Positions 1-60,354 of a stretch of DNA of 64,000 bases are shown piece after piece. The first letter of the stretch is position 1. Every line of letters begins with the position of its first letter. Source of the DNA: Octopus sinensis (lineage: Eukaryota); the NCBI RefSeq assembly GCF_006345805.1, contig NC_042997.1:41416001-41480000 (forward strand), given 5' to 3'. Both the position numbers and the translations under genes were made by a program. The notes under the pieces were generated by a model. That model saw only the letters and a program-made list of their open reading frames with translations, ran no database searches and was not told the DNA's origin.

Positions 1-3000
1 TGGGGTCTGGGAAGCCAGGGGCTGCACCAGGCTCCAGTCTGATCTGGCAGTGTTTCTACAGCTGGATGCCCTTCCTAACGCCAATCACTCTGCGAGTGTA
101 GTGGGTGCTCTTTACATGCCACCTGCACAGGTGCCAGCGGGGGGTCTGGCATCGGCCACGATCGGTTGGAGCTTTTAATGTGCCACCGGCACGGAAGCCA
201 GCCAAGGCAGCGCTGGCATCGGCCACGTTCGGATGGTGCTTTTTATGTGCCACCGGCACAGAAGCCAGTCGAGGCGGCGCTGGTAACGGCCACATTCGGA
301 TGGTGCTTTTTATGTGCCACCGGCACAGGTATCACAACTACTATTTCCATTGATATTTGTTTCGATGTTCATGTACATGCACTTGACTCAACAGGTCTCC
401 TCAAGCACAGCGAGATGGTCTGGGACCCATGGTACTTTCAATGGCCAGGGGCTATTGGAACTGGTGCCGGAAGCATCCCGGGTCTTTGCAGTCACAGCAC
501 ATCTCCTGAGATCTCGGTCCTTCGCCATTGCCTCAGTGAAGCCCAACGCTCTGAGGTCATGCTTGACTACCTCATCCCATGTCTTCCTGGGTCTACCTCT
601 CCCCCTGATTCCTTCAACTGTTTGGGAGCGGCACTTCTTCACACATCTCTCCTCATCCATCCGCAGTACATGACCATACCATCGCAAGCGTCGCTCTTGC
701 ACACCACATCTGATGCTTCTTATGTCTAGCAGTTCTCTCAGGGTGCTTACACTCTGTCGTGTATTAACACTGACATTACACATCCAGCGGATCATGCTAG
801 CTTCATTTCTTTCAAGTCTACGCATGTCCTCTGCAGTCACGACCCATGTTTCACTACCGTGAAGCATGGCAGTTCGCACACATGCATCATACAATCTACC
901 TTTCACTCTGAGTGAGAGACCCTTTGTCGCCAGTAGGGGTAGGAGCTTTCTGAACCTTGCCCAGGCTATTCGTATTCTAGTGGTGACACTCTCTTAGCAT
1001 CCACCTCCACTACTAACTTGGTCACCTAGGTAGCGGAAACTATCAACTACTTCTAGTTTCTCCCCCTGGAGTGTGATGGAATCTGTTTTCTGAGTATTTG
1101 TGGTGTCTATTGTCCCTGTGCATCTGCCACACATGAAAACTATCTTATCAGTTAATTTCCCTTTGATGTTGCTGCACCTCTTATGCGTCCATAGCTTACA
1201 TTGGGTGCATCTTATGGAGTTTCTACATACACTTTTCCTACAGATTGAGCGGGGCCACTTGCCCGATGGGGTGTGTGCTGAGTTCGCTTTTCTGCTTACT
1301 ATAACTTTGGTCTTTGCTACATTTACTCTAAGGCCCTTTGATTCTAACCCTTGTTTCCACACCCAAAATTTCTTTTCTAGTTTTGGTAGTGATTCTGATA
1401 TGAGAGCCAGGTCATCAGCATAGAGGAGCTCCCAGGGACAACCTGTTTTGAATTCCTCTGTTGTTGCCTGGAGGACTATGATGAATAAAAGGGGACTGAG
1501 GGCTGAGCCTTGGTGTACACCTACTTCTACCCGGAATTCTTCACTATATTCGTTGCCAATCCTAACCTTGCTGACAGCCTCTCTGTATAGGGCCTGTACA
1601 GCCCTTATTAGCCATTTGTCAATCTCCAGTTTCCACATAGACCACCAGATAAGGGATCAGGGGAACCTGTCAAAGGCTTTCTCCAAGTCCACAAAAGCTA
1701 TGTAGAGGGGTTTATCTTTAGCTAGGTACTTCTCCTGCAGTTGTCGGACCAGGAATATAGCATCAGTGGTGCTTCTACCCGGCACAAAACCGAACTGCAT
1801 CTCATCTAAGCAAATTCTCTCCCTAATGAGATGGGTTATGACCCTCTCTGTGACCTTCATCACCTGATCCAACAGTTTAATATCCCTGTAGTTATTTCTA
1901 TCTAGAGCGTCACCTTTACTCTTGTAGCAGTTGACTATATGGTGCTGCTACGCTAGTCATTGGGTATAGCTCCGTTATGTACTACCTGGTTTACAATGCA
2001 GGTGACTAAGCCATACCCCACACCACCAGATGCTTTAAGCATCTCAGCAGTGATTCCTGATGGCCCAGGGGTTTTTCCTAGCTTCATATCCTTAATTGCT
2101 TTAACTACTAGGGAGCTGTCGATTTGGATAGTTGGTCCCTCTTCTGGGTCAACATTTGGAAGTCTCTTCTCCTCCGATTCATTCTCCACATTCGGCAGTC
2201 TTTCATAATGGCTTTTCCAAGCCTCTTTCTTTTCAGAATCACTAAAAGCAAGTGCACCATCATCCATTCGAACACATTTCTCTCCTGTGGCATCACAATT
2301 TTCTCTCACACACTGTCTTGCAATCCGAAATACCTCAGTTCTTTGGTCCTCATGTCTCTGGACATTGGCAAACTTCTTCTTTTCTGCTTCACTCTTGGCT
2401 ATGTATACCTGCCACCCAGCCTCCTTTCTGGCTACATGTTACTGTTCCTTGCTACCACCATCCTTCAAGGCTTTCTAGGCCTGTTTCTTTGCTCTAATGG
2501 CTTTGTCTACTGTTCTATTCCACCACCATGTAATTCTGGGCCTGGAAGAGACTTTGCACCATCCACAGACTTGGTCTGTGGCACTCAGTAAGCTGTCCCA
2601 TAGGAATTTCCAGCTACCTTCTATGTCCGACATCTGTAACTCCTCCTCCCTGTCATCAAATTTCTTGCTGAGAATGTCCCTAAATCTTTGACCATGTGAA
2701 GGCTTCTTTAGCTTCCATATTCTTTTTTTCTGGATTGGTCTGCTTCTAGGTATCCTTCTGGCCTCAAGCCTAAAGTCACTAATATGCTAGGGAGTACATT
2801 CTTCACCCGGGAGGGTCTTTGTATTGAAGAGCAACCATGCGTCCCGCTGTCTGGTGAGGATGAAATCAATCTGGCTTACAGAGTTTCCTCATTGATAGGT
2901 TGTAAGGTGGCTGTCTGGCTTCCTGAAGTTAGAGTTGCAGATTAAAAGGTTACATGCATCACAGAATTCCAGTGGCCTAGTCCCCTCATTGTTTCGGGTG

Positions 3001-4870: not shown

Positions 4871-5060
4871 TGCCAAGTTACTTGCAAGACAAAGACTTTT
4901 AGTTGAGACGGAGAGTGAAACCAAGGGAAGTGGATGGATGCCAGAGGAGAGGTTAGAGCATGAGAGAGGGACAGGATAGTTGCCTTGCTATACACTAAAT
5001 AGTGTAATTACTCTTTCTGTGCCAATTAATTTGAACAGAAACAAAATGGTAAATTCTTAC

Positions 5061-5309
5061 CTGTACTGATGGCAGGAATTGCAATTGATGTATAAGACAT
5101 TTCTTCAAGACCTGCCAAACAATTTCGAACAGCTCTTGAAAGGTGAAAAATTTCCTCAGTTTGTCCATCATTCCAAACGGGTCCAACAACATGAAGGATA
5201 GCCTTGCATTTGAGTTTACCAGCTTTAGTTGACACTACTTCTCCAGGTGTCAGTTCACTCTTTCTTTCTTTCATAATTCTGTTAGATTCAGCTTGAATTC
5301 CAAACCCAC
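5061..5309 (-). CDS. PARP14: Macrodomain exon (C-terminal half of a macro domain), PARP14/PARP9/PARP15-like; symbol is family-level only
   Basis: tctttgcAG acceptor and G/gtaag donor; 249 nt, phase 1-1; translates GGFGIQAESNRIMKERKSELTPGEVVSTKAGKLKCKAILHVVGPVW..SIAIPAISTG, with the macro motifs T.AG.L.CK.I.H.VGP.W and SIAIPAISTG. Confidence 0.85.
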
Positions 5310-5984
5310 CTGCAAAGATATTTGCATTCTTATGTTCCTGTTTAATACATGTTAATATGTGTTAATATGTGTAATATATTAATATATTATTTCAATACCT
5401 CAGCGAAAAAATATGAATCTCAGAAGATGCTCAGATAAGAAGTTTTGTCTTTTCAACCTCGTCACTTACTCTTCTATTTCTGCACAAATCATAAACCCCT
5501 TGTTAGTTCTTTTCATTATTCTACCTATTTCATTACCATGTAGACATGTAAATATAGTTTCAATAGTTTCGTCTTCCCTGTTTTTGCCTTTAATATAACC
5601 TTAGCTCAAGCAATTCCTTAACCGCAACATATTCATTCATTCATCTATGAAAGTCTATCACACAGTCACTTTATTTCTCTAATTTTGTCTTAGACTGGCT
5701 CTCAGATTCTTCAATTCTATTTTACTCTTATCAACATTTGCTGTCTCGTTAAATTAACTATGCCACACAAATCCCAAAAGAATATTTTTCTACCTCGTGT
5801 TCTGAACATCTCTACCCACCCTCTCTCTCTGTCTTTGTCTCGCTCTCACTCTGACTGTGTGTCTCTCTCTTTTTCGATTACCACTCGCCTCGCCAAGACT
5901 TCCTCCTCTTCCACCAACACCACCACCCTATATATACTAGTGCATGCACTCGGATTCCCCAATTCGATTTTTAATAAGATGGTG

Positions 5985-11144: not shown

Positions 11145-12335
11145 TTCCTGAATGGATGTTGTTTTCACAGCGATAGTGCTCTTCTCAGTACATGAGCCGT
11201 TCCAGTTAACACGATTTTTTGCACTTCCTGTAGGGATGGTAAGCCTGGTATCATTTTCAAATAGGTTTCAGTACCTTTTTTTAAATCATTCCTAGAGATC
11301 CCACAATCACTGGAAATGTAGTCACCTTGAGATGCCACATTTTTTCAATTTCTATTAGCAAGTCTATTTATATTTACTAATCATGTCAAATATCTTTCGC
11401 TGCTATATTGTGATCGCAAGGAATACTCATGTCAATTAATAAACACATCCTTTTTGTTTGATCTTTTATGATAATATGCGGTTTATTAGCTTTTATAGTC
11501 TTGTCGGTCTGCACGGGGAAGTCCCATAGAATCGACACATTTTCTTCTTCAGTCACAGCTTCAGGATGGTGTTTATACCATTTGCCAGCGGTTTTGATTT
11601 TCTAATGCCGACATATTGTTCAGTGTAAATACCGGCTGACTCTATCATGTCTTGCTTTATATTCTACAGGTGCTAAGACTCTACACCCTGAGATTAGGTG
11701 GTCTATTGTTTCAATCTCATCGTTACAGAATCAGCATTTTGGGTCAGCTCCATTTTTTATCACATTGGCTTGGTAGTTCCGGGTTAATATGCATTGGTCT
11801 TGAGCAGCTAATATGAAACCTTCACTCTCTGCTTTTAGCCCTGAGCTTCGTAACCATTGGTGCGTGTGTTTCTGGTCGACATCAGCTTGTTTGCTACGGG
11901 CCACATACTTGCCATGGAGAGGTTTCTGTTCCCATCTGCTAGCTAATTTTTCATGCGCTTTTGTCTTTGCAATTAATTTTATTTTCTTTGCAGCAGCAGT
12001 TGGCGCATTTCCTTCAGCCTGATCAATCTGGTAGGTATCTAAGAGATCAGTAGCGAATTTTTTGCTCTCTTTGAGAATAGAGTGAATTTTTTTCGGTCTT
12101 TCATGTTTTTCAACAAGTTTTAGCATCCAATCGTTGGTTGCTTCAAGGTATTTGGCCAGTTCGATTGTGGTGGTTTTGTATGTAAGTTCAAGCTGGATCA
12201 AACCTCGTCCTCCCTGAGCTCTGGGAAGGTAAAGGCGATCCACGTCTGCCTTTGGATGGTGCATCTTATTACAAGTCAGTAGCTTGCGGATTCTTCTTTC
12301 AATTTTCATTATTTCACTGGTATTCCAGTTAAGCA

Positions 12336-12336
<1 letters not shown>
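11145..12336 (-). mobile_element. R4/Dong-clade LINE 3' part (post-RT region, CCHC finger, restriction-like endonuclease)
   Basis: HHPKADVDRLYLPRAQGGRGL, LHGKY, WLRSSGLKAESEGFILAAQDQ; then C..C/H/C, ILWDFPVQTD..ANKP, VQKIVLTGTAHVLR*; (TTA)n at the 5' flank. Confidence 0.9.
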
Positions 12337-12369
<33 letters not shown>

Positions 12370-12865
12370 TGGATCCGGCTATCAGCTGAATCCATTGTGA
12401 AGATTGCCCCGCCGCTCTCTTTTGATTGGGAGAGGAAGGCAATTTTTATTTGTCTAGTGGCTGTAGCGAAAGAGGTAGTATGGTGGATCCGTTTGAAAGG
12501 GATAAAGACAGGTGCCTTTCTCTTTAGCCAAGTCCACATCAACTTTTTCAAGTTTCATTTGAAAAGGAAATTGAGGGTGGAGAGGGAAGTGTTGCCTTGT
12601 AGCAAGTTTGTTGAAAGGTGGGTGAATGGTGGAATAATGACCAGTGTGAAAGGACCAATTCTGAGCGTGGACCTGTAAACAAAAGAAGGGTTCTTTCCTT
12701 GTCGTTCAGGTACCTGTGGCTTGTATGGTTTTTTTTCACAAGGCCCTTCATGCGCTTCCCCTATTGGGAGTTTTAAATTGTTGCAAAACCCATTGTATCG
12801 TCTTTTATGTTGTATATGTTTAATGTAATTTTATGTAAGCCCTTGTGGCCAATAAACGAATTTAT
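12370..12865 (+). mobile_element. Tx1 (L1-clade) LINE 3' end
   Basis: ORF 12397-12678 (FICLVAVAKEVVWW.RLKG..FFKFHLKRKLRVER..FVERWV) resembles Tx1 ORF2 C-termini; ends CCCTTGTGGCCAATAAACGAA plus (TTA)n. Confidence 0.6.
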
Positions 12866-12879
12866 TATTATTATTATTA

Positions 12880-13395
12880 TTATTTCCTTTGCACAGCTTT
12901 AACACGGGAGATGTACCACGGTGTCACATGTTCACTACCTGTGAACTAAGGTAACACCTCTTATTTTTCGAGCACCTTCCAGAGTATTCAAGCGGTTCCA
13001 AGAAGTGCTGTTTTCTGCAAGTGCTCCACCGTTATTGCAGCCCCTATTTGTTCCATGTACTTCTCAAGATTTTTACTCACTATTTCCAGGGCTCCAACAA
13101 TTATTATTACTACTACCACCTTTTTCATCAACCACAACTGCTTAACCTCCCAAGTTAACCTCATATCTATCGACTTTTCTTTTTTCCTTGTCACATACCT
13201 TATTGTCTGCTGGGCATACTGTATCTATGATCCAGCATCGTTTGCTTTCTTTCTCAATTAAGACTATGTTTGGCTTCCTATTCTTTATCTCATGGTCGCA
13301 CTGAATCATAAAATCCCACAGGATCTTTACATTATCATTTTCGATGATGATGCAAAGAACCTGTGGGAATTTATGTTTCAGTGCTATCATGAGAT
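12880..13395 (-). mobile_element. R4/Dong LINE family A, 3' end
   Basis: KILWDFMIQCDHEIKNRKPNIVLI; VIIIVGALEIV..LQKTALLGTA; 3' UTR shared with 32330-32420; TAA repeats on both flanks. Confidence 0.85.
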
Positions 13396-13397
13396 AG

Positions 13398-13433
<36 letters not shown>

Positions 13434-13457
13434 TATTATTATTATTATTATTATTAT

Positions 13458-15085
13458 TATTCCATGTTTGACTTTTGCTTTATATTTGTACAAGTTGGCT
13501 CCAAGTCTCACCCAGAGACCTCAAGAGACAACAGGTTGGAAGTTCACGTTGTTGTTATGCCTAGTGTGCCATATATTTGGTTGTTTTTTTTGGTGTTGTA
13601 CTAGTGGATGTCTAAAAAAAATGTTTGTTTTAAACCTTGAGATTACATAGAAAGTATTTTGCGTAGGATATGAGCAGTTCCCATGAGCACTATCTTTTGA
13701 ATTTCTGCCATTTTGGGGTTTCCTGGTATCTGAGTTAGGTAGCAATCAGCCCCTTTTGCTATCATTCCCAGGGCACCTATGACAACAGGTATTGTTTTAG
13801 TCTTCAGGTTCCACATTTTGCTGATTTCTATTTCAAGATCTTTATATTTGCTCAGTTTTTGGTAGGTTTTGACAGATACGTTTATATCGATTGGGACAGT
13901 CATATCAATGGGGAGGCATGTTCTTTGTCTGAAGTCTTTCAATATGATGTCTGGCCTATTTGCATCTATCTTTCTGTCAGTTTGAATGGGGAAGTTCCAG
14001 TGGAGTGAGATGTGGTCATTTTTAAGCACTGGGGGTGGTTTGTGCTCCCACCAGTTTTTTCATGGGGCAAATCCAGGTTTTTGCAGATTACCCAGTGAAT
14101 ATATTATGCAGGTCTATCATGCCTGTTGTTGACATACACGGCATGTTGGGCTACTGCTGTTCTTTAATATGTTGGCCTGGTAGTTTCTTGTTGGTAGGCA
14201 TTGATCTTGAGCTGCTATGATAAACCCCTCTGTTTCAGATTTTAAGCCAGAGGCCATTAGCCATTGATGGGTCAGGGCTTTGTCAACATCTGCATTATTC
14301 GCTCTCTTTGGGTATTTGCCATAGAGAGATTTTTCTTGCCATTTATCATTCAGAATATCTAAGGCCGCAGTTTCAGCACGGGTTTTCATGCGCTTAGCTT
14401 TTTCTGTGCCCGTTTCTTGTATGTCTATGTCTAATTCCAAAATTTGTTGTATTCGGAATTCACTTAGATATTCCTTTGCCTGTTTTGTTACTGAGTATGA
14501 TGCTTTCTTGTTTTCATGTTTTGAGACAAGTTTTAACATCCAGTCCTCAGAGTTTTTCAGGTAGGTGTCTAGGCCAATTGTAGCAATCTTCATTGTTATT
14601 GCCAATTGTAAAAGTCCACAGCCTCCCTCTTTTCTTGGCAGATAAAGTCGTTCTGTATCTGCCTTAGGGTGGTGCATTCTATGCATTGTCAACAGTTTTC
14701 GTATTTTTCTGTCAAGATTACATATTTCAGTAATTGACCAGTTAACGATATTGAAACTGTAAGTCACGACTGGTATGGCTAATGTATTGATCGCTTAGAT
14801 CCTGTTTCTCGCATTCAGCTCTGTCTTGAGTATTGCTCTTAATCTGTGATAGCATTCTCTCCTGATCCTTTCCTTCATCTCTGAATGCCTTATTCCGTCC
14901 CCTTCAAATACCACTAGGTACTTGTATTTCTCTGCTGGGTCTAATTTTCTTTTATAACATTCTGCTGGTCAAGGTTAACGTTAGATGTTTCTGTCATTTT
15001 TCCTTTGATAAAGGTAGCTTTTGCACATTTATCGAGGCCAAATTGCATTCTGATGTCATCACTGAATTGTTTGACAATCGCCAGT
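13458..15085 (-). mobile_element. R4/Dong LINE family B (RT end to 3' UTR)
   Basis: ORFs 14117-14767 and 13643-14029 (WNFPIQTDRKIDANRPDII..KYKDLEIEI..PVVIGALG); QFSDDIRMQFGLDKCAK near 15020-15080; (TTA)n at both ends. Confidence 0.92.
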
Positions 15086-15099
15086 AAGCCCTATTATTA

Positions 15100-16782
15100 T
15101 TATTATCGCTTTATCACAGGTTTTGTTTGAGATCCTGGAGTATTGCATGCGTAGCGGGCTTACTACCTGCAGCCTACAGTGCCTGTTATTCGTTCTTTTC
15201 ACCTATCTAATACTTTCCTGATTATTCTGGCCGAGACAAGGAAGCAGACCTTATTTAACAATTCCACTGGGCAGTCTATTCCAATTTCCTTTATATTCTT
15301 CTTGATGCCTCCTGATACTGTTCCGAAGGACTAAACAATATTATTATCATATTATATAACTGTTCAATATTTAGTAGACTGGAAGGAAATTTCTATTGCA
15401 TCACTTGTAACACCTCCGAGTTGCTGGGGTCTGTGTAGTATTGCATGTTCTTTTCTGCTGCTGGGAGTGTGCGAATTCTTCCGGTACAGTATTGCGTTAG
15501 CTTTTTCTTTCCTTGAGGTATGGTGCTGTCTTTTATTGTGTTACTGCTTGTATTGTGTGTTGAGTGTGCAATGCGTTGGTTCCCGAGGTTGCTGGTGGGA
15601 GTTTATTTCCCTGGGTAAATGCTGTATAGAGTGTGTCTTGTACCTGTGAGTTGTTTTGTTTAGGTTTCATTATTGGATTGATAGTGTGTTGCATAGGATG
15701 TGGCCTGTTCCTAGCAGGGCTATTTTTGGGACAGTTTGTAGTGTTGAGGATCCAGATAAAGCTTTTACATTTTTATTCTTATGATTTTTTTTTATCATGC
15801 CCAATGATATTATTATTATTAGTATTGTTTTTGCGTTTATGCCCCATATTTTGAATACTTCAATTTAGAGCTTTTCTCTGTTTCTTTTTTGACACTATTT
15901 TGAAGGAACTGCAATGTCTATCAGTAAGCAGGTGTTTTTTTCCCCAATCCTTGACTATTATGTTTGGGCGATTAGCTTATATTTCTTTGTCAGTTAAAAC
16001 AGCATATCCCAGATGACTGTGGCCTGATCGTTGTCTTGGACGTTGCTTGGCACATGCTTATACCACCTGTTGTCAATTTTGATGTAATGTTGGCCTATTG
16101 TCCTGTGGATATAATTGCTTACTTTGTCATGTCTGTATATATATTCAGACATGGCAAGGACTGGGCAATCCGTATCTGTGTTGATTGCACATTCAGCATT
16201 TGGTTGAGGCCTGTTTTCAGTATTTTGTTTTATAATTGTTTGGAGTTAGGCATTGGTCTTCTGCAATGAGAATCAGTCCTACCGTTTCGGCTTTTAGTCC
16301 AGAGCTTTTGAGCCATTGTTGGATTTTACTTAGGCTCACTTCCTCTCTGTCAAGCCTTGCAGGGTATTGGCCATGAAGTCATTTTTCTCTCCATTTCTCT
16401 CCATGGACAATCCTTACCACATTGTCATGATGTCTCTTATATTCTTTCTGGGCTAGTGGCGTACATTGATTGATAATATACCATATGGTTTCACCATTTT
16501 TTCCACAAATTCTGCACTTATCATTTTCTGATGTGTTGTCTATTCTATATTTGATATAATTGGTTATTAATGCTTGATCTTAGGCAGCACAGATTAGAGC
16601 CTTCGTTTCCGGTTTTAAATCACATTTAGTCATCCATAGCCATCGTTTTTCTCTGTCTGTCTTATCTTCAACATCCCCATGAAATTGTCCATGCATTGTT
16701 TTCTTTACTCACCTATTTTCAATTACATTCATTCTCAATTGCTTGTACAATGCTTTATCTTTGCAATCTTCCATCCTAATGG
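15100..16782 (-). mobile_element. Mosaic of R4/Dong fragments (family C 3' end, probable N-terminal region, B-like/A chimera)
   Basis: 15105-15340 is homologous to 27960-28270; 16100-16385 reads QWLKSSGLKAET; 16400-16775 reads MEDCKDKAL..KCRICGKNGETIWY..HHDNV. Confidence 0.75.
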
Positions 16783-18890: not shown

Positions 18891-19022
18891 TTCTTTATAG
18901 GTATTTATATCCGTTTTTTGTATAGACTAATGCAGATCACTATTATTAAAATTATACAATGTGATTAAATAATTCAAACAAATTACTAAAAAGGTTTAAA
19001 CAGTTTTATTTTACCACAAATA

Positions 19023-21230
19023 TTAGTAAATTAACACACTGGTCTGTGGCGCATTCTCATCTTCGAATATATTAATTGTATCAATAAGTTTGTCTGAGAG
19101 AGAAATGGCAAAATCAAATTTAATATTAATTATTGACAATAATTTAGGTATCATAGAAGTCATCAATATCAAAGTAATCTTTGTGAAAACTGATAAGTCA
19201 AGATCATTTCGATTTATTATATTGTTGCAAGCAAAGAAGAAAGATACGATTAGAAACAGTTTCACAATGGATTTACCAATCTCGTATCTCAAAGGAAAAT
19301 GATGGCTAACAATTGTCTTGAGCAATTTAGCATTTATGAATTCCTCTCCGTATTTTTCCTGAACTAAATTTGGACGGAACATTTTAGTGAATTTTATAGA
19401 CTGAAATATTATTGACTGATACCGCTTTAGAAAGGCGTTCACAATTGCAATACCATAAACGAAAAACATGGCAAGAAACCATATGTAACCTACACAATCG
19501 GGTTTAGCAAGTACTACGATAGCTATGGTGAATATGTAGTTGCTTAAGATTTGAAAACTTACAAGAAATATGTAGATTGAACAAATCGCCCATGATATAT
19601 AAAATGGCAACGATAGAAATGTTAAAGGTACAGCAACTATCTTGAAAATATAATTGGGACTCAGATAGAGTGGGAAAATATAAACTTTGGAATAACTTAA
19701 TGGTAAAGTTAAAATCCAATAAACAATTGGGATTCCGTAATAAACGAGGCACAGAAATAATTCACAGACAGAAAATATAGCAAATAAAATTGTGATCGCA
19801 ATAAAAAACCAAAGCAATAGGAATTTCCAGAAAATATTTCTGTTGTAGTAATATAACCAAATTTTCTTTATACGGTTAATCCAAGTATAAACTATTAAAT
19901 GCCAGAAATTTGGGTTTAAAGCAGTAGAAATATTAGCTTTCATTATTGCATAAAGTAGATCATAATCCTGTTCTGTAGAAATATTTAAGCTGCCATATTT
20001 CTCTAATAATCTGATATTTTGAATGAGAAACGTGCAAGTGGATCTTTGATGTAATGTATAATATGCGAGAGTCTCACTTAAACGACTGGGAAGAACGAAG
20101 AGAATACAGTTGAAAAATATGTAGCCGATGAACCACAAAAAGGGACCCCCGAGGAAGCCACCTGTATTTTCATAACTTTCTGGAATTCCTAATATTAGGG
20201 CGCGAAAACCTAATGGTATGCGGTCTTGTATAAATATTTTTGTTGTTTCATATAAAAAGAAGTAATACATCAAAAGATCCAGGAGAATTACTGAAAGAAA
20301 AAACATAATGCAAAAGAATCTTCTTAGTCTTGAGGCAAAGAAAGAAGAATAATGGAAACAAAATAAGCAAGACAGAAAATGAGAGAAACTGTAAATACTA
20401 TGTTTTCCATTGATCCATTCTGATTCGTATGGCATTGTGTTTCGATAGTAATATGAAGGTAATTTGGCTTTTGAAACAAAACTAATAAGCAATGGGAAAA
20501 ATATCCACAAAACTGTTCCAACAATATTTTCATAATTGACAAACATACTATTTTCAATATTATTTCCTAAACAAATAGATTTGGGGTGATAAAGATTACT
20601 TTCGTTTTTATAGAGTTTACAGCAATAGTTCTTCACTATCTCCCGATTTATACCAATTCTACTGCAAGCTTCATATGCGTGAGGGCTGTTCTTCTTCATG
20701 TCTTGAGACAAATTTACAAAAAAACACATGTATCCTGATTTTCCCATTTGCAATTTATCGATAAATACGAGTTTCTTCAATTCCTTGAAAATCAAATATA
20801 TTATATCGCGTCTGTGAATATTTTGTTTTCTACATTTTATATCGATATTAATTCTTGGATAAGCAATATAGACATCTAACAAATTCAAAGAGTAAATTGA
20901 AAAATCATAGTAGAAATTTTTATATGCTATTAAACCGTCTGGTTCGTCTGGAATCCAGGTAAATTGTCTCGCGTTTGCAAAATAATCCAATGGTACAGGA
21001 TTAAGAAGGTCATCAAGTGTCTTGTTTGATAAATGGAATTCAAAATTGAAAACCTTTTTTTCCAATTTTACTAAACGAGATAAAATCTCACTGACATTGG
21101 GAGGGATTTTAATTTCACAAGCATTGTCGAGTTCCTTCGCATCGATGTTTAGTGATGTCAGTGTGATAATAAGAATGATTGAAAGAATAAGAGAACTGGT
21201 TGCTGTTATTGTCGTCTGCATGGCAGCCAT
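19023..21230 (-). CDS. Uncharacterised 735-aa membrane protein: signal peptide, ~200-aa Cys-containing ectodomain, roughly 9-11 TM segments; single coding exon
   Basis: Uninterrupted 2208-nt ORF in AT-rich DNA; hydrophobic N-terminus (LILSIILIITLTSLNIDA); sequons NVS, NKT, NLS, NES; many hydrophobic stretches; splice acceptor ttttattacAG about 10 nt upstream of the ATG (near 21241); conserved paralog at 33257-34123. Confidence 0.9.
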   Translation of the reverse strand: MAAMQTTITATSSLILSIILIITLTSLNIDAKELDNACEIKIPPNVSEILSRLVKLEKKVFNFEFHLSNKTLDDLLNPVPLDYFANARQFTWIPDEPDGLIAYKNFYYDFSIYSLNLLDVYIAYPRINIDIKCRKQNIHRRDIIYLIFKELKKLVFIDKLQMGKSGYMCFFVNLSQDMKKNSPHAYEACSRIGINREIVKNYCCKLYKNESNLYHPKSICLGNNIENSMFVNYENIVGTVLWIFFPLLISFVSKAKLPSYYYRNTMPYESEWINGKHSIYSFSHFLSCLFCFHYSSFFASRLRRFFCIMFFLSVILLDLLMYYFFLYETTKIFIQDRIPLGFRALILGIPESYENTGGFLGGPFLWFIGYIFFNCILFVLPSRLSETLAYYTLHQRSTCTFLIQNIRLLEKYGSLNISTEQDYDLLYAIMKANISTALNPNFWHLIVYTWINRIKKIWLYYYNRNIFWKFLLLWFFIAITILFAIFSVCELFLCLVYYGIPIVYWILTLPLSYSKVYIFPLYLSPNYIFKIVAVPLTFLSLPFYISWAICSIYIFLVSFQILSNYIFTIAIVVLAKPDCVGYIWFLAMFFVYGIAIVNAFLKRYQSIIFQSIKFTKMFRPNLVQEKYGEEFINAKLLKTIVSHHFPLRYEIGKSIVKLFLIVSFFFACNNIINRNDLDLSVFTKITLILMTSMIPKLLSIINIKFDFAISLSDKLIDTINIFEDENAPQTSVLIY

Positions 21231-21325
21231 ATTTCGTTATCTGTAATAAAAAGAAAATAGAATACATAAAACAATGAAGATTCATTTTAGGTTCATTACT
21301 CCATAGATATTTCAAACAGAAAATA

Positions 21326-22769: not shown

Positions 22770-23760
22770 GCCTATCTCTGTCACGAACGGGGTAAAACAT
22801 GATGATATACATTAAACACATCAGCGAATCTTGATGATGAAGTGTCACTACGCATTCAGAAATTCAGTTTTGCTTTTGGCAAATTAGAAGACCGCCTATG
22901 GTCTAGACATGCGACAAAGATTAAGGTATACAATACATGTATCTTAACCTCTTTGTTGAATGCTTGGGAAACCTGGACTGTGTATCGTAAGCACTTAAAA
23001 CTTATGGAACGTTTTCATCAACAATGTCTGAGAAGGATTTTGAGGATCAGCTGGAAAATGTTTGTGAGTGACGATGAAGAGGCTTGAAAGAGGGAAATGC
23101 TTCAGTATTGAAGCTTTGCTATTGCAGTACAGATTGAGATGGAGTGAACACTTAGCGAGAATGACAAACAACAGAATGCCTAAACAGCTTTTTTACGGAG
23201 AATTGGTGACAGGTAAGCGCCCGTCCCACAAACCAAAGATGTGGTACAAAGATTGTCTGAAGTCAGGATTGAATAAGATAAACGTTCCAATTGACAACTG
23301 TGAAGATTTAGCGCATTGCCAAGAAAAATGGAAAAAATTTCGTATGAAGGCAAAAATGAATTTGAAAGAAAGAGAATGGAGCATGGCAAGATCAAAAGAA
23401 AAATGAAACAAAGTGACAGGAATGATATTCTAACAAACATTGATGAACGTGGTCATCATACATGGGATGAACGTGGAAAGAGTTGTCTTAGTAAGGCTGG
23501 GTTAAAGAGCCACATGAAATCCCACATGGCACAACCGCGCATTGATTATAGATGGACAAAAGATTTCGAATGCATCCTCTGTCATAAAGTATGCAGATTG
23601 AAAAGTGGCTTGAAGAGGCACAGTAAAGTTCATGGAGCTGTAAACTATACAATTACCAAGTTTTCTTGCGCTAATTGTTAACAAACATGCAAGTCTTTGG
23701 CAGGCCTCAAAGATCACATTCGTGCAGCTCATTGATGATATTCTAGGGCATAAAAAAGTC
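22770..23760 (+). mobile_element. RTE-BovB 3' part with three C2H2-like fingers
   Basis: AFGKLEDRLW..ETWTVY..FHQQCLRRIL; QYRLRWSEHLARM..LFYGEL; then KSCLSKAGLKSHMKSH, CILCHKVCRLKSGLKRHSKVH, CANC..CKSLAGLKDHIRAAH. Confidence 0.85.
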
Positions 23761-25399: not shown

Positions 25400-25980
25400 G
25401 GCTGCGAGCTGGCTGAAACGTTAGCACGCCAGGCGAAATGCTTAGCGGTATTTCGTCTGCCGTTACGTTTCTGAGTTCAAATTCCGCCGAGGTCAACTTT
25501 GCCCTTCGTCCTTTCGGGGTCGATTAAATAAGTACCAGTTACTCACTGGAGGTCAATATAATCGACTTAATCCGTTTGTCCTTGTTTGTCCTCATTGTGT
25601 TTAGACCCTTGTGGGTAGTAAAGAAATAGGTATTTCGTCTGCCGTTATGTTCTGAGTTCAAATTCCACTGAGGTCGACTTTGCCTTTCATCCTCTCGGGG
25701 TCGATTAAAATAAGTACTAGTTACGCACTGGGGTCGATATAATCGACTTAATCCGTTTGTCTTTCCTTGTTTGTCTCCTCTATGTTTAGCCCCTAGTGGG
25801 TAATAAAGAAATAGGTATTTTGTCTGCCGCTATGTTCTGAGTTCAAATTCCGCCGAGGTCAACTTCACCTTTCATCTTTTCAGGGTCTATAAATTAAGTA
25901 CCAGTTGCATGGTGGGGTTATTCTAATCCACTGGCTGCCTCCCCCAAAATTTCGGTCTTTGTGCCTAGAGTAGAAAAGAA
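25400..25980 (+). mobile_element. tRNA-derived SINE family A, head-to-tail trimer
   Basis: GGCTGCGAGCTGG..GTTAGCA head, GAGTTCAAATTCC B-box, TTTCATCCT..GGGGTCGAT..AAGTACCAG core repeated three times. Confidence 0.85.
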
Positions 25981-27570: not shown

Positions 27571-27889
27571 TATTATTAATTTTCTGTATTTAGAAATACT
27601 TTGTATCCATTTAACCCAAATTTTTATCTTGTATCCTATATAAGTTCCAGTTTTCGTAATTTCCTAATTGATGCATTCCCATGATTGCTGATGTAATTAA
27701 AATGATTAAAGTGTTGACTGATATTGCTATTTCTGATAATCGCATAATTATTTCTAGTAAATCGTGTAATATTTGCTGACATAATTATGTGAAAATATAA
27801 CCTCACCTAAAGCCGAATTTGCAGTTGTAAACAAATTGATGTCCGTGTGTTATAAATAAATATATCTAAAAATTTCTTTTATAAATTTC

Positions 27890-28387: not shown

Positions 28388-29580
28388 ATCTATCTATCCA
28401 TCTATCTATCTATCTATCTATATCTATCTATCTCTCTATCTATCTATCTCCATCCATCCATCCATCCATCCATCCATCCATCCATCTATCTATCTATCTA
28501 TCTATCTATCTGTCTATCTATCATTTCACCTTCCTTATTGACTATTCGTGGGCATGCAACTTCAACTGTAGAGCATACGTGGTGCATCTTGTCCACTACC
28601 TGTAAGTCCGGTCTATTATGCAGTAGTACCTGATCTGTTTGGATTGGGAAATCCCAAAGGATTTTGTTAGTCTCCGTCTCCGCCACTCCCTGCGGTTTGT
28701 TCTCATACCACGTCTTTCCTCTCTCTAGCCCCCACTTTTCAATGTAGCACTTTCACTACCTGGTAGTATCGCCACGACTTCTAGTGGTTTGTGGGCAAAT
28801 CTTAAGCATTCCTTCTCTGTTGCAGATTCGGCACAACGGAGACACTTGCTCATTCCTAAGGTTGACCCTTCAGTTCGTGGCCAAAGCTTGGTCTTGTGCT
28901 GCCGGTCTCTTTTTTTAGGGTTCCTTTCATCAACCAATCCCACCTACTTTTCCCAGCAACTTCTGTTGTGGCTACATGGAATTGATTGTGTAGTCCCTTC
29001 TTGCGTAATTCTTCCTCATGTCCCTTTTGGTACTTCTTCCTTTGTTTTCCCTTTTCTCACTGCTATCAATACTCACTCGTTCCTAACTGTCGCTATGAAG
29101 GTTTCCTTACTTTGGGCTTAATATCTCATTAAGCGCTCAAGTTTGATACGCACGCAGTCTTCCATAACTATCAGTCCCTTTCCTCCATTTGCTCTCTTCA
29201 TGTATAGACGATCAATGTCTGCACATTGATGATGGGCTTCATAAATCGTCAGGAGCTTTCTTGACTTCCTGTCCATCTCCTTTAGCTCCTCCTGTGTCCA
29301 CTTCAGGATTCCAGCGCCATACCGAACTACTGTGACTACGCGTAAGTTTATTGCCGAAGTTTTGTTTCTGGTGTGCAGTTTTGAGGCCAATAGTTTTCTC
29401 ACTCTCTGCATGTACTCTCTTTTTGTCTTTTCCTTCATGTCGTGGTATTTGAGTCCATCCGCATCAAGTATTCTCGGGTATTTATAGTTGGACTGAGGTT
29501 GAACTGCGTTCATCGTTTCACCACTTGGTAGCCATATGCCTTCTGTTCTGGCAAGCCTTCCTCGTCTCATCGCCATCGCA
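27890..29580 (-). mobile_element. R4/Dong LINE family C, interrupted by (TATC/CATC)n at 28337-28520
   Basis: ORFs 29118-29576 (AINL.VVTVVRYGAGILKW..ADIDRLYMKRANGGKGLI) and 28498-28686 (KILWDFPIQTD..HNRPD). Confidence 0.88.
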
Positions 29581-29989
29581 GCACATTTTGATAGTCTGAA
29601 CTACATCTTTATATCATCGAAGAGGTGAAAATCAGGAGAAGAATCTTCCAGGAGAACAGTGTCCCCCCCCCACTGATATTCTCTTGATTGAAATACTACA
29701 GAAAACAAAGTTGGGTTATGATCTGTGGAAAGGTAAAGGCGCGAGAGAGGAGACGAAGGGGTAGCAGGCAGTTAAGCTAGCCAAAATTCTAGCGTATGGA
29801 CGAATTTATGTATACAAATCTAAATTTTGGAGAGGACCTAGCATAACTAAGATATATAAATTTACGAAATACGACAGGATGGCAATTTAACAGCTCTCCC
29901 CCAAAATCTGTACGCCTTTTCTATTACTTTCTATGTTTACTAAAACTTTGAGATGTTTATAGATATTTTTATGTCTTATCTATGTAGCG

Positions 29990-30032
<43 letters not shown>

Positions 30033-30049
30033 ATTATTATTATTATTAT

Positions 30050-32235
30050 TATTATATGTTTGACTTTTACTTTGTATTTGTACAAGTTGACTCCAAGTCT
30101 CACCCAGAGATTTCGAGAGACAACAAGTTTGAAGTATTATGCTTAGTGTGTCACATATTTGGTTTTGCACAAAGTATTGTTCTAGAGAATGTTTAAGAAA
30201 ACATAAGAAAATTATGAGTTTGTTTTAACATTTGAGATTACATAGACAGTACCTTATGTAGGATATGGGCTGTTCCCATGGGCACTATTATTTGAATTTC
30301 TGCTATTTTGGGGTTTCCTGATATCAGAGCTAGGTAGGAATCAGCCCATTATGCTATCATTTCTAGGACACCTATGTCAACAGGTATTGTTTTAGTCTTG
30401 AGGTTCCACATTTTGCCAATTTCTGTTTCAAGATCTTTATACTTGCTGAGTTGCTGGTAAGTCATGACATACCTATATGTCGATTGGAACATGATTCCTG
30501 CGCCATACCGAACTACTGTGACTACGCGTGAGTTTATTGCCGAACATGATTTTTGTCTGAAGTCTTTCGATATAATGTCTGGCCTATTCGCATCTATTTT
30601 TCTGTCAGTTTGAACGGTGACTTTCCTGAGGAGTGAGATGTGGTCATTTTCAAGCACTGGAGGTGGTTTGTGTTCCCACCAGTTTTTATCCTGGGGCAGG
30701 TCCAGGTTCTGAAAATTACCCAGTGAATATACTGTGCTGCTCTATTATGCCTGTTGGGATACTCTGTAGGCGCAAGAAGACAGGACATAGATCAATGGTT
30801 TCATTTTGTTGTTTACATACACGACATGTTGGGCTACTGCTATTCTTTAATATGTTGGCCTGGTAGTTCCTTTCAGGTAGACATTGATCTTGGGCTGCTA
30901 TGATAAAGCCTTCTGTTTCTGATTTTAAGCCAGAAGACACTAACCATTCATGAGTAATGGCTTTGTCAATACCGGCATTATTAGCTCCCTTTTGGTATTT
31001 ACCACTGAGAGGCCATTTATCCGTAAGAATATCTAAGAAAGCAGTTTTAGCACGGGTCTTCATACGCTTAGCTTTTTCTGTGCTTGTTTCTGGGATTTGT
31101 TGTACTAGGAATTCACTTAGACAATCCTTTGCCTGTTTTGTTACTCAGTATGATGCTTTCTTGTTTTCATGCTTTAAGACAAGTTTTAACATCCAGTCAT
31201 CAGAGTTTTCCAGGTAGGTGTTGAGGCCAATTGTGACAATTTTCATAGCTAATTCCAGCTGTAAAAGTCCATCTTCCTTAGGGTGGTGCATTCTATGCAT
31301 TGTCAACAATTTTCAGATTTTTCTGTCAAGATTACAGATTCCAGTGATTGACCAGTTAACGATATTGAAACTATAAGTCACGACCGGTATGGCTAAAGTA
31401 TTGATCGCTTTGATCCTGTTTCTTGTATTTAGCTCTGTCTTCAGTATTGCTTTTACCCTGCGATAACATTCTCTTCTGATCCTTTCCCTCATCATTGAAT
31501 GTTTTATTCCATCACCTTCAAATATCCCTAAGTATTTTTAGCTCTTCGCTGACTCTAACTCCTTTATGATATTCTGCTGGTGAAGATTAACGTTGGATGT
31601 TTCTGTCATTTTTCGTGTTATAAAAGTAGCTTTTGCACATCTATCGAAACCAAATTGAATCCTGGCGTCATCACTGAATTGTTTAACAATTGCTAGTAAA
31701 CCTTGTAGTTGTTAGTAAGTTTTTCCAAAGAACTTTAAATCAACCATGTAAAAGAGATGATTTATATTTTTATCAAACATTTTATACCCATATTGTACAT
31801 CATTGAGCAATTTAGAGAGAGGTATTAAGGCTAGACACAGGAGGAGTGGTGATAGTGAGTAACCTTGGAAAATGCCACATGAAATTCTTACAACTCCAGC
31901 ATTGAGAAATTCATTGTCACTGTTAAAAGTCAGTATTATTCTCTATGATCTCATACTTACAGACAAGACGTTTTGCAGAGTCGGTGCTATTTTATACATT
32001 TCTAGTCATTTTGTAATCCAGCTATGTTGTAGAATATCAAAAGCATTTTTATAATCTAGCCAGGCTTTCGACATTCATGTGTTGTTTGTGATAATATCTT
32101 GAGGTTCCACATTTTGCCAGTTTCTGTTTCAAGATCTTTATACTTGCTGAGTTGTTGGTAGGTCTTGACAGATACGTTTATGTCGATTGAGACAATCATA
32201 TCAAAGAGTAGGCATTATTTTTACCTGAAGTCCTT
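30050..32235 (-). mobile_element. R4/Dong LINE family B copy (RT to 3' UTR) plus an extra RLE fragment at 32092-32235
   Basis: GIFQGYSLSPLL near 31840-31880; ORFs 31313-31495, 30716-31063 and 30349-30657 are homologous to 13458-15085; (TTA)n at 29994-30054. Confidence 0.9.
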
Positions 32236-32329: not shown

Positions 32330-33234
32330 CTTTGCACAGCTTCTAATGCTGGAGATGTACTACGGTGTCAGCTGTCCACTACCACTGAACTAAGGTAACA
32401 CCCCTTATTTTTTGAGCACCATCTGGAATATTCGATCGGTTCCAAGCAGTGCTGTTTTCTACAAGTGCTCCGCCCTTATTGCAGCCCGATTTGTTTCATA
32501 TATTTCTCAAGATTTTTACTCACTTTTCCCAGAGGTCCAACAATTATTGATATTACTACCACCTTTTTCATCGACCACAACAGCTTAACCTCCCAAGCTA
32601 ACCTGTTATATATATATCGACTTTTCTTTCTTCTTTATCGCATAACTTCTTGTCAGCTGGGCACGCTATATCTATGATCCAGCATCGTTTGCTTTCTTTC
32701 TCAATTAAGACTATTTCTGGTTTCCTATCCTCTATCTCATTGTCGCACTCAATCATAAAATCCCATAGGATCTTTACATTATCATTTTCGATGATGATTT
32801 CGGGTTTATATTTATACCACTGTTTTACTTTGTCGAGTCTATACCTGTTGCAAAGTGTCCAATGGACAATCTTTGCTCTATTTTCATGAACTCTCTTATA
32901 TTCTTTATGGGTTACTGGCGCTCTTTGACTGGTAATACGCCATACGGTTTCACCATTTTGTTTACAAACTCTGTACTTATCACTTTATGCAGTGTTGTCT
33001 ATTCTGTATTTGATGCAATTGGTTTTTAATGCTTGCTCTTAGGCAGCACAGATTAGAGTCTCTGTTCTCGGTTTTAAATCACTTTTAGTAATCCAAAGCC
33101 ATCTTTTTTCTCTGTCTGTCTTATTTTCAATATCCCTATGAAATTTTCCATTCATTCTTTTCTTTATCCACCTATTTTCAGTTTCATTCATTCTCAAGTA
33201 CTTGTACAATGCTTTATCTTTGCAATCTTCCATC
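32330..33234 (-). mobile_element. R4/Dong LINE family A, 3' ~900 bp
   Basis: MEDCKDKAL..SDLKPRTETLICAA, CCHC finger and RLE; 3' UTR as at 12880. Confidence 0.88.
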
Positions 33235-33256
33235 TGGCATTTAATAATCTTCCATC

Positions 33257-34123
33257 TGGTATTTAATAATTTATACTTGGATTAATCGTATAAAGAAAAT
33301 TTGGTTATATTACTACGAGAGAAATATTTTCTGGAAATTCATTACACTTTGGCTCTTTGTTTCCATTACAATTTTATTTGCTGTATTTTCTGTCTGTGAA
33401 TTATTTCTGTGCCTCGTTTATTATGGAATACCAATTGTTTATTTGATTTCAACTTTACCTTTCAGCTATTCCAATGTTTATATTTTCCCACTCTATAGGA
33501 ATAATAATCATATTTTTGAGATTGCTGCTGTACTTTTTACTATTCTATCGTTTCCATTTTATATATTATGGGCTCTTTATTCAATCTATATATTTCTTTC
33601 AAGTTTCCAAATTCTTTGCAATTACATATTTACGATAGCTGTTACGGTTCTTGCTAAACCTGATAATGTCGGGGACGTATGGTTTGTTGCCATGTTTTTC
33701 GTGTATACCGTTGCAATTGTGAAAGCCATTATAAAGCAGTATCAATCAGTTATAGTTCAGTCTATAAAACTCACCAAAACCGTTTGTCCAAGATTGGTTC
33801 AGGTAAAATATGGAGAGGAATTCATAAATGCCAAGCTGTTCAAGACAATTGTTAACCATCATTTTCCATTGAGATACGAGATTGGTAAATCCATTATAAA
33901 ACTGTTTCTAATCGTATCTTTTTTCTTTGCTTGCAACAATATAATAAGTCGAGAAGACTTGGACTTATTAGCATTCACAATGATTACTTTGATATTGATG
34001 ACGTCTATTATACCTAAATTTTTGTCTATAATAAACGCAAACCTCAGGTTAACAATAACCATGTTTGATAAAATTATCGAAACAATTAATGTCTATGCCG
34101 GAGATGCTTATCAAGTTATTTGA
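33257..34123 (+). pseudogene. 5'-truncated paralog of the 735-aa membrane protein (matches from about residue 443 to the end); frame fully open
   Basis: No stop from TGG 33257 to TGA 34123. WYLIIYTWINRIKKIWLYYY..HHFPLRYEIGKS aligns with WHLIVYTWINRIKKIWLYYY..HHFPLRYEIGKS; the start of the 3' UTR is also homologous. Confidence 0.85.
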
Positions 34124-41160: not shown

Positions 41161-41970
41161 ATCATCATCATCGTTTAACGTCCGTTTTCCGTGCTAGCGC
41201 GGGTTGGACGGTTCGACCGGGATCTGGGAAGCCAGGGGCTGCACCAGGCTCATCTGATCTGGCAGAGTTTCTACAGCTGGATGCCCTTCCTAACGCCAAC
41301 CACTCCGCGAGTGTAGTGGGTGCTTTTTACGTGCCACCTGCACAGGTGCCAGGGGGGTCCGGCATCGGCCACGATCGGTTGGAGCTTTTAACGTGCCACC
41401 AGCACGGAAGCCAGCTAAGGCGGCGCTGGCAACGGCCACGTTAGGATGGTGCTTTTTATGTGCCACCGGCACAGGAGCCAGTCGGGGCGGCGCTGGCATC
41501 GGCCACGTTCGGATGGTGCTTTTTATGTGCCACTGGCACAGGAGCCAGTCGGGGCGGCGCTGGCATCGGCCACGTTCGGATGGTGCTTTTTATGTGCCAC
41601 CGGCACAGAAGCCAGTCAGGGCGGCGCTGGAATCGGCCACGTTTGGATGGTGCTTTTTATGTGCCACCGGCACTGAAGCCAGTCGGGGCAGCGCTGGCAT
41701 CGACCACGTTCAGATGGTGCTTTTTATGTGCCACCGGCACAGGAGCCAGTAGGGGCGGCGCTGGCTGGCGTCAGCCACGTTCAGATGGTGCTTTTTATGT
41801 GCCACTGGCACAGAAGCCAGTCGGGGCGGCGCTGGCATCAGCCACATTCGGATGGTGCTTTTTATGTGCCAGCGGCACAGGTATCACAACTACTATTTCC
41901 ATTGATATTTATATTTATTTCGATGTTCATGTTCATGTACTTGACTCAACAGGTCTCCTCAAGCACAGCG
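41161..41970 (-). mobile_element. RTE 3' end with expanded 67-bp array (about 9 units, 41330-41880)
   Basis: Very similar to 1-420; (GAT)n tail at 41161; unit spacing 41461, 41528, 41595. Confidence 0.9.
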
Positions 41971-52955: not shown

Positions 52956-53400
52956 TTGTTTGGAAAATGTGTATTTAGATGAAGTTTGTCATACTAAATG
53001 GCATTTGTGTGGCTGTTTTATTGCAAAACATCTTTTTAAAGATTTTAAAGCTGGATTCGTTCAGAGGTGTGACTTTCAGATTTCATGGACATATGTTAGA
53101 ACTCTGGTTTCTGTGAGTGAAATTAGCATTGTTCAATCAGGAATGCCATAACTTCTTTGCAGATATTCTCAAGACAAGACGATTTTAGCAAATGTATTCG
53201 TCTATTTTAAAAATGGGAGAACTTTTGAAAAACTTTGGCTGTTATTTGTAGCATATCTGGACTGTTTGAAGGCTATATGTATTTCAGGTTTACATCAGGC
53301 ATGTAAAGTGGATGTTTATGATGTGGATAGCATTATATTGTTACATGGATGGTGAATAACTTGTATTTATCTAGCATTAAATCTTGGTTTTATTTTGCAG

Positions 53401-53598
53401 GAATATCTGCCACGAGTATGGAAGGAGAAGATGAGGGCAGAACGATATTGGTGTCAGGAATCCCAACTGATTTCCGTTTGGAAGCCATTCAGTCTTATTT
53501 TGAGAACAAGAGTAGATCAAGTGGAGGACCTATTAAAGGAAAGCCAGAACGGATCCAAGATTCTGAGGAAGTTATTATCACTTTTGAATCGGAAAAAG
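53401..53598 (+). CDS. PARP14: PARP14-like gene, RRM-like exon (ATG at 53418); symbol is family-level only
   Basis: tattttgcAG acceptor and G/gttag donor; MEGEDEGRTILVSGIPT..IQSYFENKSRSSGGPI..EVIITFE resembles the YFEN.RRSGGG RRM of PARP14/PARP10. Confidence 0.82.
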
Positions 53599-54286
53599 GT
53601 TAGAAGAAATATTCTTTATTTCATGAAATCATTTACAGACATCATCATTGTCATCATTTAATATCTGTTGTCCATGCTTGCATAGGTTGGACAATTTGCA
53701 CATAATTACTGTGAACACATTAGATTAATATAAAGCAATGTTAAAAATCATCATCATCGTCATTTAACATTCATTTTCCATATTTGCTTGCATTGAATAG
53801 TTTGACAGGATCTGGTGAGCAGCATTGACCTCTGGGGTCAGCTTTGGCATGGTTTCTATTGCTCAGTGCCCTTCCTAATGCCAACCACTTTACAGAGTGG
53901 ACTGGGGACAATTTTCCTGCCATCATTACTAGTGAGGTTGCCAAGTAATGTCCAAGACAGGAAAAAAAAAAAAGGAAAAACACTCCTTCTACTAAATGGA
54001 GTGAGGAACCGAAAGGGTTATGTAGGGGTTATGCTAGGTATTGAAAGGCTAAAGTGTGATCAAGGAGGTACAATAGAGAAACTGTAGAGCAGTGTTCTAT
54101 TCCAAGTTGTCACACCATTCTGTATCCGCTCATTAAAATTCTTTAGTCATCAACAATCTGGCAGTCATGGGTAGGCTTTTATAACGAAGAGGTCTCAAAA
54201 CTGAAACGTGCTTGGAGTTGTCTCTCTGCTGCTAAATTCATTCCTTCACCTTAACCTGAAGGAATATCAAATGGCATATATATATA

Positions 54287-59895: not shown

Positions 59896-60060
59896 TATAT
59901 GGAGTTGTTAAATAATTGGAACTGCATTTTAATGCTAAAATCTCCAAATTTGAAGAATTCTCAAAATCATTTCAATCTAAAATGTGTTAAAACATCAGTA
60001 AATTGACTTTAATTTGATTCTTTTACCAAAATGTATTTCCATTCATTGTATTTATTGCAG

Positions 60061-60294: not shown

Positions 60295-60354
60295 GTAAGT
60301 AATTTTTTTCTCCTCTCTTTGTCTAATCTACCTATCAGAGTCAGTTATTAGCAT

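Follow-up and report, generated by a model that had tools for sequence, protein, structure and literature searches.

A signal peptide followed by an extracellular domain and a bundle of membrane helices is an arrangement shared by several described protein groups. In the NRF-6/acyltransferase-3 proteins (PF01757 plus the NRF domain) the signal peptide and a Cys-containing N-terminal ectodomain precede about ten helices, and lineage-specific expansion has occurred in invertebrates. The SID-1/SIDT proteins and the seven-helix proteins with a GOLD domain (TMEM87, GPR107/108 and Wntless) also have a signal peptide, with an ectodomain of 200-300 residues and a helical bundle. The retinol receptor STRA6 reportedly has about nine helices in an N-out/C-in topology, as is said of the zebrafish structure (PDB 5SY1). 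The octopus chemotactile receptors and Cys-loop channels are cephalopod-expanded membrane proteins with a ligand-binding ectodomain. Here we describe a gene of Octopus sinensis whose product resembles these proteins in layout. It is located at 19023..21230 on the minus strand of a stretch of 64,000 nucleotides (NCBI RefSeq assembly GCF_006345805.1, contig NC_042997.1, positions 41,416,001 to 41,480,000), hereafter the window. An earlier note on the window, made from the letters alone, had reported there an intronless 735-codon open reading frame (ORF) for a multi-pass membrane protein of unrecognised family. We are highly confident that the gene belongs to an undescribed protein family distributed across Spiralia (molluscs, annelids and nemerteans), whose members are nine-helix glycoproteins without known relatives.

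The family was defined from an alignment (A2) of 61 diverse members, to which the conservation figures given below refer. It differs from each of the groups mentioned above. In contrast to the NRF-6/acyltransferase-3 proteins, none of the 61 members has a Pfam match, Acyl_transf_3 and NRF included, and a conserved catalytic-type His is lacking. The ectodomains of the SID-1/SIDT and GOLD-domain proteins are all-beta, whereas that of the octopus model is mixed alpha/beta; no Pfam or Foldseek match links these proteins to the octopus family, and helix number and motifs differ. Cys-loop channels have four helices and Neur_chan domains, whereas the model of the octopus protein has nine helices, and Pfam searches with the window protein and the 61 members gave no Neur_chan domain. 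Unlike the octopus chemotactile receptors, the nine-helix family is common to bivalves, annelids and nemerteans, and its ectodomain is not fast-evolving. With regard to G protein-coupled receptors (GPCRs), no 7tm Pfam match was obtained, and the only GPCR matches in Foldseek were at E>8 with a TM-score of about 0.08. The lack of Cys-loop or GPCR motifs, already remarked from the sequence, was thus borne out by Pfam for the window protein and for all 61 members.

The features of the gene and of its product are the following.

19023..21230, minus strand: complete single-exon coding sequence, 735 residues plus TAA stop (ORF and gene call of the public assembly)
21241..21272, minus strand: splice acceptor, a polypyrimidine tract then CAG, ending 10 nucleotides 5' of the ATG (sequence)
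21141..21230, minus strand: residues 1-30, predicted hydrophobic N-terminal signal peptide or uncleaved signal anchor (hydropathy, family-averaged hydropathy and model helix 6-25)
20550..21140, minus strand: residues 31-227, alpha/beta ectodomain with six family-conserved Cys, W90-x-W92 and four glycosylation sequons (sequence, model and family averages)
19128..20549, minus strand: residues 228-701, predicted nine-helix membrane domain (AlphaFold2 model and positive-inside count)
19761..19763, minus strand: codon of Glu490 in the fourth membrane helix (conservation among the 61 members)
19026..19127, minus strand: residues 702-735, predicted cytoplasmic tail with a C-terminal helix at 707-726 (model and charge distribution)
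19005..19010, minus strand: putative AATAAA polyadenylation signal, 13 nucleotides 3' of the stop codon (sequence only)
27807..27865, minus strand: candidate exon of the 5' untranslated region (5'-UTR), ending in the consensus donor TTTAG|GTGAGG (sequence)

The ORF is exactly as previously reported, runs on the minus strand and is uninterrupted from ATG to TAA. As random triplets are stops in 7.5% of cases within the local AT-rich sequence, the probability of 735 successive open codons is p ~1.3e-25 at this base composition. The gene had already been called in GCA_006345805.1 (chromosome CM016859.1, ~41.43 Mb), with a 735-residue product. An acceptor 5' of the coding exon had also been noticed before, and its position is the same in each of the five octopus paralogs that we compared, i.e. 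the window gene, P0001, P0005 and P0007 of O. sinensis and P0002 of O. bimaculoides, despite unrelated or divergent upstream sequence. In P0007 it is kept though an unrelated (ATCT)n microsatellite fills everything 5' of the pyrimidine tract. This conservation argues for a real, conserved 5'-UTR intron, which the acceptor sequence implies for the octopus gene. As to the exon that would lie at its other end, the candidate at 27807-27865 put forward in the earlier note does end in a consensus donor, but nothing else speaks for it. A single coding exon is present in all five octopus loci (the window gene and four others), in a member from the clam Mya arenaria (849 residues in 2550 nucleotides) and in one from the nemertean Tubulanus polymorphus (808 residues in 2427 nucleotides), so the intronless coding sequence is a trait of the family and not the mark of a recent retrocopy.

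The first homology search returned octopod proteins only, 53-90% identical, plus a distant relative, P0020, which is 24% identical and has motifs of the octopus proteins throughout its length. A second, word-indexed search with a diverse alignment gave the same 20 proteins back and added none. An exhaustive hmmsearch against 1.84 billion representatives, with a profile made of the octopus clade and P0020, recovered 190 clusters at E<=1e-3 (125 at E<=1e-30), mostly full-length proteins of 750-870 residues; full-length matches were obtained in bivalves, gastropods, an annelid and a nemertean, with E down to 1e-134. All named members are spiralians: the cephalopods Octopus and Argonauta, the bivalves Mya, Mytilus, Potamilus, Mactra and Ruditapes, the gastropod Haliotis, the annelid Owenia fusiformis and the nemertean Tubulanus. 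They are annotated as 'uncharacterized' or 'hypothetical', apart from the STRA6 label on two O. bimaculoides paralogs that is discussed below. The window protein has the features that are typical of the family, namely the N-terminal signal, the six conserved ectodomain Cys and W90-x-W92, as well as the membrane-domain motifs SRLRR, GGP, NPNFW, R453, E490, YYGIP, P577, P646 and P695. Literature searches on the gene ID, run accessions and subject gave no paper that mentions the family or is otherwise relevant. The family had been described as lineage-expanded, which is correct insofar as homology searches found about ten loci in O. sinensis, but it is at the same time an old family that spans Mollusca, Annelida and Nemertea.

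Two further observations concern annotated or assembled sequences related to the family. P0016-P0019, from O. sinensis and O. vulgaris, are annotated proteins with only parts of the family sequence joined to other sequence (gelsolin domains in the case of P0019), and are probably fused or partial gene models. Contigs encoding P0020 were seen in two independent runs with nearly identical ends; these contigs are transcript-like and have no poly(A), which is only suggestive.

Hydropathy places the N-terminal hydrophobic stretch at residues 3-32. Residues 33-232 contain seven Cys (38, 133, 169, 189, 203, 204 and 220) and four N-x-S/T sequons (N45, N69, N173 and N209), and about ten hydropathy peaks are found C-terminal of this ectodomain. 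The signal peptide, the ectodomain of about 200 residues and the Cys and sequon counts announced in the earlier note could therefore be reproduced, and its nine to eleven hydrophobic segments correspond to these peaks, which the AlphaFold2 model resolves into nine long helices. This model, computed with the 61-sequence alignment, has a mean predicted local distance difference test (pLDDT) score of 86.4, with 405 residues at pLDDT >=90, and a predicted TM-score (pTM) of 0.83; an earlier shallow octopus alignment had given a pLDDT of only 39.9 and an unusable model. A signal helix (6-25) is followed in the model by a mixed alpha/beta domain (31-225) with six strands. The nine membrane helices (TM1 to TM9) are predicted at 228-252, 297-325, 363-379, 466-499, 501-523, 527-575, 577-618, 647-675 and 679-701, in addition to a helical region at 384-462, a beta-hairpin at 623-633 and the C-terminal helix at 707-726. 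Averages over the 61 members give 37 Lys plus Arg in the predicted cytoplasmic loops versus 4 in the external loops, and 4.5 sequons and 6.7 Cys in the ectodomain, every other region having at most 0.5 sequons. Cys 38, 133, 169, 203, 204 and 220 are each kept in at least 80% of the members, conserved Cys being confined to the ectodomain. This family-wide distribution of charges, sequons and Cys supports the predicted N-out/C-in topology of a nine-helix glycoprotein with three probable disulfides.

Cys, Pro, Gly, Trp and Tyr make up most of the conserved positions, to which E490, R301, R304 and R453 are to be added. The core of the ectodomain, made of W90 and W92 of the W90-x-W92 motif, S114 and the six Cys, is kept across phyla. 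In the membrane domain, an S-R-x-R-R motif (300-304; SRLRR in the window protein) is found at the cytoplasmic start of TM2, P339/G341 and G-G-P (361-363) are conserved around TM3, the latter at its external end, and (N)-P-x-F-W (439-443; NPNFW in the window protein) and R453 are conserved in cytoplasmic loop 3. The turn between TM4 and TM5 carries the motif P-x-Y-x3-C-x2-E-x2-L-C-x2-Y-Y-G-x-P, with YYGIP at 497-501 in the window protein. P577, Y582 and Y592 are conserved at the TM6/TM7 turn, as are P646 and P695. Pro and Gly kinks are conserved in TM1, TM3, TM5, TM7 and TM9. Glu490 is the sole conserved charge within any membrane helix, being Glu in 60 of the 61 members and Asp in the other. 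TM6 and TM4, with averages of 52.6 and 32.8 residues, are unusually long and fully hydrophobic, far beyond what a bilayer needs. An invariant set of His, Asp, Ser or Lys typical of enzymes was not found among the 61 members.

Comparison with known families and folds gave negative results at every level. The window protein matched no Pfam family at E<=10; eleven close relatives had no match either, and for the 61 diverse members there were only a few singletons at E>0.01, which we regard as noise. No NCBIfam family was matched, and no chain among the PDB sequences was found by phmmer, by an 11-sequence profile or by the 61-sequence profile. The Foldseek search on a monomer model that had been suggested in the earlier note was carried out with the pLDDT-86.4 model: among 350,542 PDB chains no neighbour was found (best E=0.7, TM-scores <=0.10), nor was there any among the predicted viral structures of BFVD (best E=1.0). 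No confident match to a characterised family was thus obtained and the description as an unrecognised family holds. The predicted fold would be without counterpart among PDB structures.

The only functional name attached to the family is that of two O. bimaculoides paralogs, P0008 and P0009, which are 67-70% identical to the window protein and are called 'Receptor for retinol uptake STRA6' in UniRef. If this name were right, the octopus protein would be a retinol receptor/transporter, and it does share with STRA6 a similar size (~700 residues), about nine helices, the N-out/C-in topology and helical cytoplasmic segments. As a control we used a human STRA6 sequence, which matched RBP_receptor (PF14752) over the whole model at E=2e-261 and the zebrafish structure 5SY1 at E=2.6e-169; both libraries therefore contain STRA6. 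In contrast, PF14752 was matched by 0 of 61 family members at E<=0.1, P0009 included, and neither P0008 nor P0009 matched any Pfam family at E<=1, PF14752 included. Family profiles did not match 5SY1 at E<=10. In hhalign the family profile scored a probability of 0.2% against human STRA6 and of 1.6% against a 14-sequence STRA6 alignment, a shallow profile made of mammals and zebrafish. 5SY1 was not among the Foldseek matches of the confident model. To our knowledge, STRA6 has neither a signal peptide nor a disulfide-bonded alpha/beta ectodomain of about 200 residues, both of which are features of the octopus family. In the absence of any sequence, profile or fold similarity, what is shared is the generic layout of about nine helices, N-out/C-in, and we rejected the STRA6 identity, which we consider extremely improbable. 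The label on the two octopus paralogs is an artefact of annotation; studies of retinoid signalling in cephalopods could be misled by it, and it should not be propagated.

The ratio of nonsynonymous to synonymous divergence (dN/dS, Nei-Gojobori) was calculated among the five octopus paralogs, by region and in sliding 40-codon windows. Overall values are 0.39-0.47 (~0.42), with 0.35 for the ectodomain, 0.42-0.43 for two membrane blocks and 0.45 for the cytoplasmic parts, and no 40-codon window exceeds 0.7, i.e. positive selection was not detected among these paralogs. The gene is therefore under moderate purifying selection and its ectodomain is not diversifying; that the ectodomain has the lowest ratio argues against a diversified ligand-recognition receptor. 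Most conserved among the paralogs are cytoplasmic loop 3 (386-463, dN 0.07) and the outer half of TM4. These data show that the ORF in the window is an intact gene under purifying selection in O. sinensis. A spurious ORF or a pseudogene was ruled out by the length of the ORF, this selection and the conserved acceptor. At codons ~381-440 and ~641-660 (~19911-20090 and ~19251-19310 in the window, minus strand) the synonymous divergence is 0.10-0.17, compared with 0.35-0.55 elsewhere. Gene conversion or a constraint at the nucleotide or RNA level may account for this. Cephalopods edit their mRNAs extensively.

Three full-length O. sinensis paralogs are located at 205.0, 205.1 and 208.6 Mb on the same chromosome, ~164 Mb from the copy in the window. 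The window itself contains a second, 5'-truncated copy at 33255-34105 (plus strand), which corresponds to residues 443-725 and is 74% identical to the full gene in protein and 85% in DNA. Its frame is open over 291 codons (33248-34120), and its dN/dS versus the full-length paralogs is 0.33-0.50. It has no exact match among annotated proteins, the closest being P0014 at 90%. Homology ends abruptly at 33255, next to an unclassified repeat (32862-33234) that forms the 5' boundary of the truncated paralog; a second copy of this repeat, 85.5% identical and in opposite orientation, is present at 16403-16775, ~2.2 kb downstream of the full gene.

The gene sits between PARP14-like sequences, as had been pointed out before, with a Macro exon on one side and RRM exons on the other:

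5029-5361, minus strand: Macro domain exon (E=2.8e-20 in a domain search), within a called Macro+PARP gene that lies downstream of the window gene on the same strand
53331-53600 and 60018-60299, plus strand: PARP14-type RRM exons of a different gene (domain search)

The presence of PARP14-like pieces on both strands suggests a local PARP14-like duplication. At the three other O. sinensis paralog loci (205-208.6 Mb) there is no PARP and no other called gene within 10 kb, and the Mya, Tubulanus and O. bimaculoides loci have no PARP. The PARP14 neighbourhood is therefore peculiar to the window copy and gives no hint about function, and the innate-immune role, a speculation of the earlier note based on these neighbours, is not supported.

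The gene is surrounded by repeat-rich, gene-poor sequence. Retroelement fragments were found at 391-2786 (minus strand, with an RVT_1 domain at 997-1656, E=4e-13), 11734-14794 (minus), 22806-23678 (plus) and 28501-31144 (minus). Either a tandem repeat of a GC-rich 67-bp unit or a 137-bp unit related to it occurs at 146-328, 41319-41881 and 56959-57222, the 67-bp unit being present in 8.4 copies at 41.3-41.9 kb; ORFs that are long but spurious ('...GAFYVPPAQ...') arise from these repeats, as do the peaks in GC content around 1 kb and 41 kb. At 25447-25906 there are 2.5 tandem copies of a 185-bp unit, with 86% matches.

The architecture fits that of a receptor or channel. We tentatively propose, as the reading with the best fit though by itself less likely than not, that the family forms a membrane conduit, either a channel for ions or a transporter of solutes or lipids, because of the kinked nine-helix domain, the buried Glu490 next to conserved Cys and Tyr, the over-long hydrophobic helices, the lack of catalytic-type residues, and the conservation of both the ectodomain and the cytoplasmic helices. 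The ectodomain (dN/dS 0.35) is as conserved as the membrane core, which we also count in favour of a conduit. The site of permeation or coupling would be at the outer end of the TM4-TM5 hairpin and involve Glu490 together with the Cys and Tyr residues next to it. Above this site, the conserved ectodomain would deliver or sense one conserved ligand or substrate rather than a diversified repertoire, and the paralogs of the octopus would all have one activity, varied by tissue or substrate. In its boldest form, the proposal is that spiralians alone possess a structurally new class of ion channels or transporters, unrelated to any solved or curated family of membrane proteins, in which a nine-helix conduit around an invariant membrane glutamate would be gated or fed by the disulfide-bonded ectodomain. 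We hold this form to be less likely than not.

A glycosylated, Cys-containing ectodomain, a number of paralogs in each octopus genome (about ten loci in that of O. sinensis) and a single coding exon, as in many chemoreceptor families, could instead evoke a diversified sensory or immune receptor for variable ligands or pathogens, which together with the PARP14-like exons on both sides of the gene would form an innate-immune module. We hold this to be unlikely: the ectodomain evolves more slowly (0.35 versus 0.42-0.45 in the other regions), with no 40-codon window above 0.7, its W90, W92, S114 and six Cys are kept across phyla, and the PARP14-like pieces are on opposite strands, 14 kb and >32 kb away, with no counterpart within 10 kb of the three other paralogs. 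Ectodomain and cytoplasmic loops are both conserved, and the slow evolution of loop 386-463 (dN 0.07) would suit a conserved intracellular partner, as expected if the protein served in structure, adhesion or scaffolding without any transport, in the manner of a tetraspanin-like organiser; nine helices with Pro/Gly kinks and a near-invariant buried Glu exceed what anchoring needs, and we regard this explanation as rather unlikely. That the protein could be a membrane-embedded enzyme, such as a transferase of acyl or glycosyl groups or an NRF-6/acyltransferase-3-type enzyme that modifies lipids, is a thought raised by the long, hydrophobic helices and by an NRF-6-like layout and invertebrate expansion, which are only a lead. 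It is improbable given that the 61 members have no Acyl_transf_3, MBOAT or other enzyme match in Pfam and no invariant His, Asp, Ser or Lys, and that no structural neighbour was found in the PDB. Finally, the intronless coding sequence of every member examined, the ~164 Mb that separate the window copy from the other paralogs, the reverse-transcriptase fragments that fill the window and the repeat adjoining the truncated copy might be taken as signs of a domesticated or mobile gene for an envelope-like glycoprotein of viral or transposon origin. The conserved 5'-UTR intron acceptor, the lack of any BFVD match, purifying selection, a broad and apparently vertical distribution over three phyla and the lack of a transposon gene consistently adjacent at the octopus, Mya and Tubulanus loci examined make such an origin very improbable.

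Several points weigh against the conduit proposal and the family description joined to it. A lone conserved acidic residue would also suit a receptor that does not conduct, or could take part in a structural salt bridge with, for instance, R301, R304 or R453, and in the predicted model no pore can be pointed to without an oligomeric state. No internal repeat was detected by hhalign, either between the N- and C-terminal halves or between hairpins, whereas many transporters have one. The statement that there is no structural neighbour refers to whole-chain Foldseek searches of PDB and BFVD only, and a public look-up placed the octopus gene on the genome assembly only, with no transcript contigs like those of P0020. 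Taken as a whole, a spiralian nine-helix family explained as a membrane conduit seems to us slightly more probable than not.

If its predicted fold is truly without relatives, the family represents a new class of animal membrane protein. A third of the animal phyla have kept it over a span exceeding 500 million years, but no model organism has it, and for this reason it has stayed invisible. Families of this kind are candidates for physiology specific to spiralians, for example in sensing, in the handling of ions or lipids, or in the biology of larvae or shells. Glu490, the ectodomain and the easily cloned single-exon coding sequence offer testable handles on its role.

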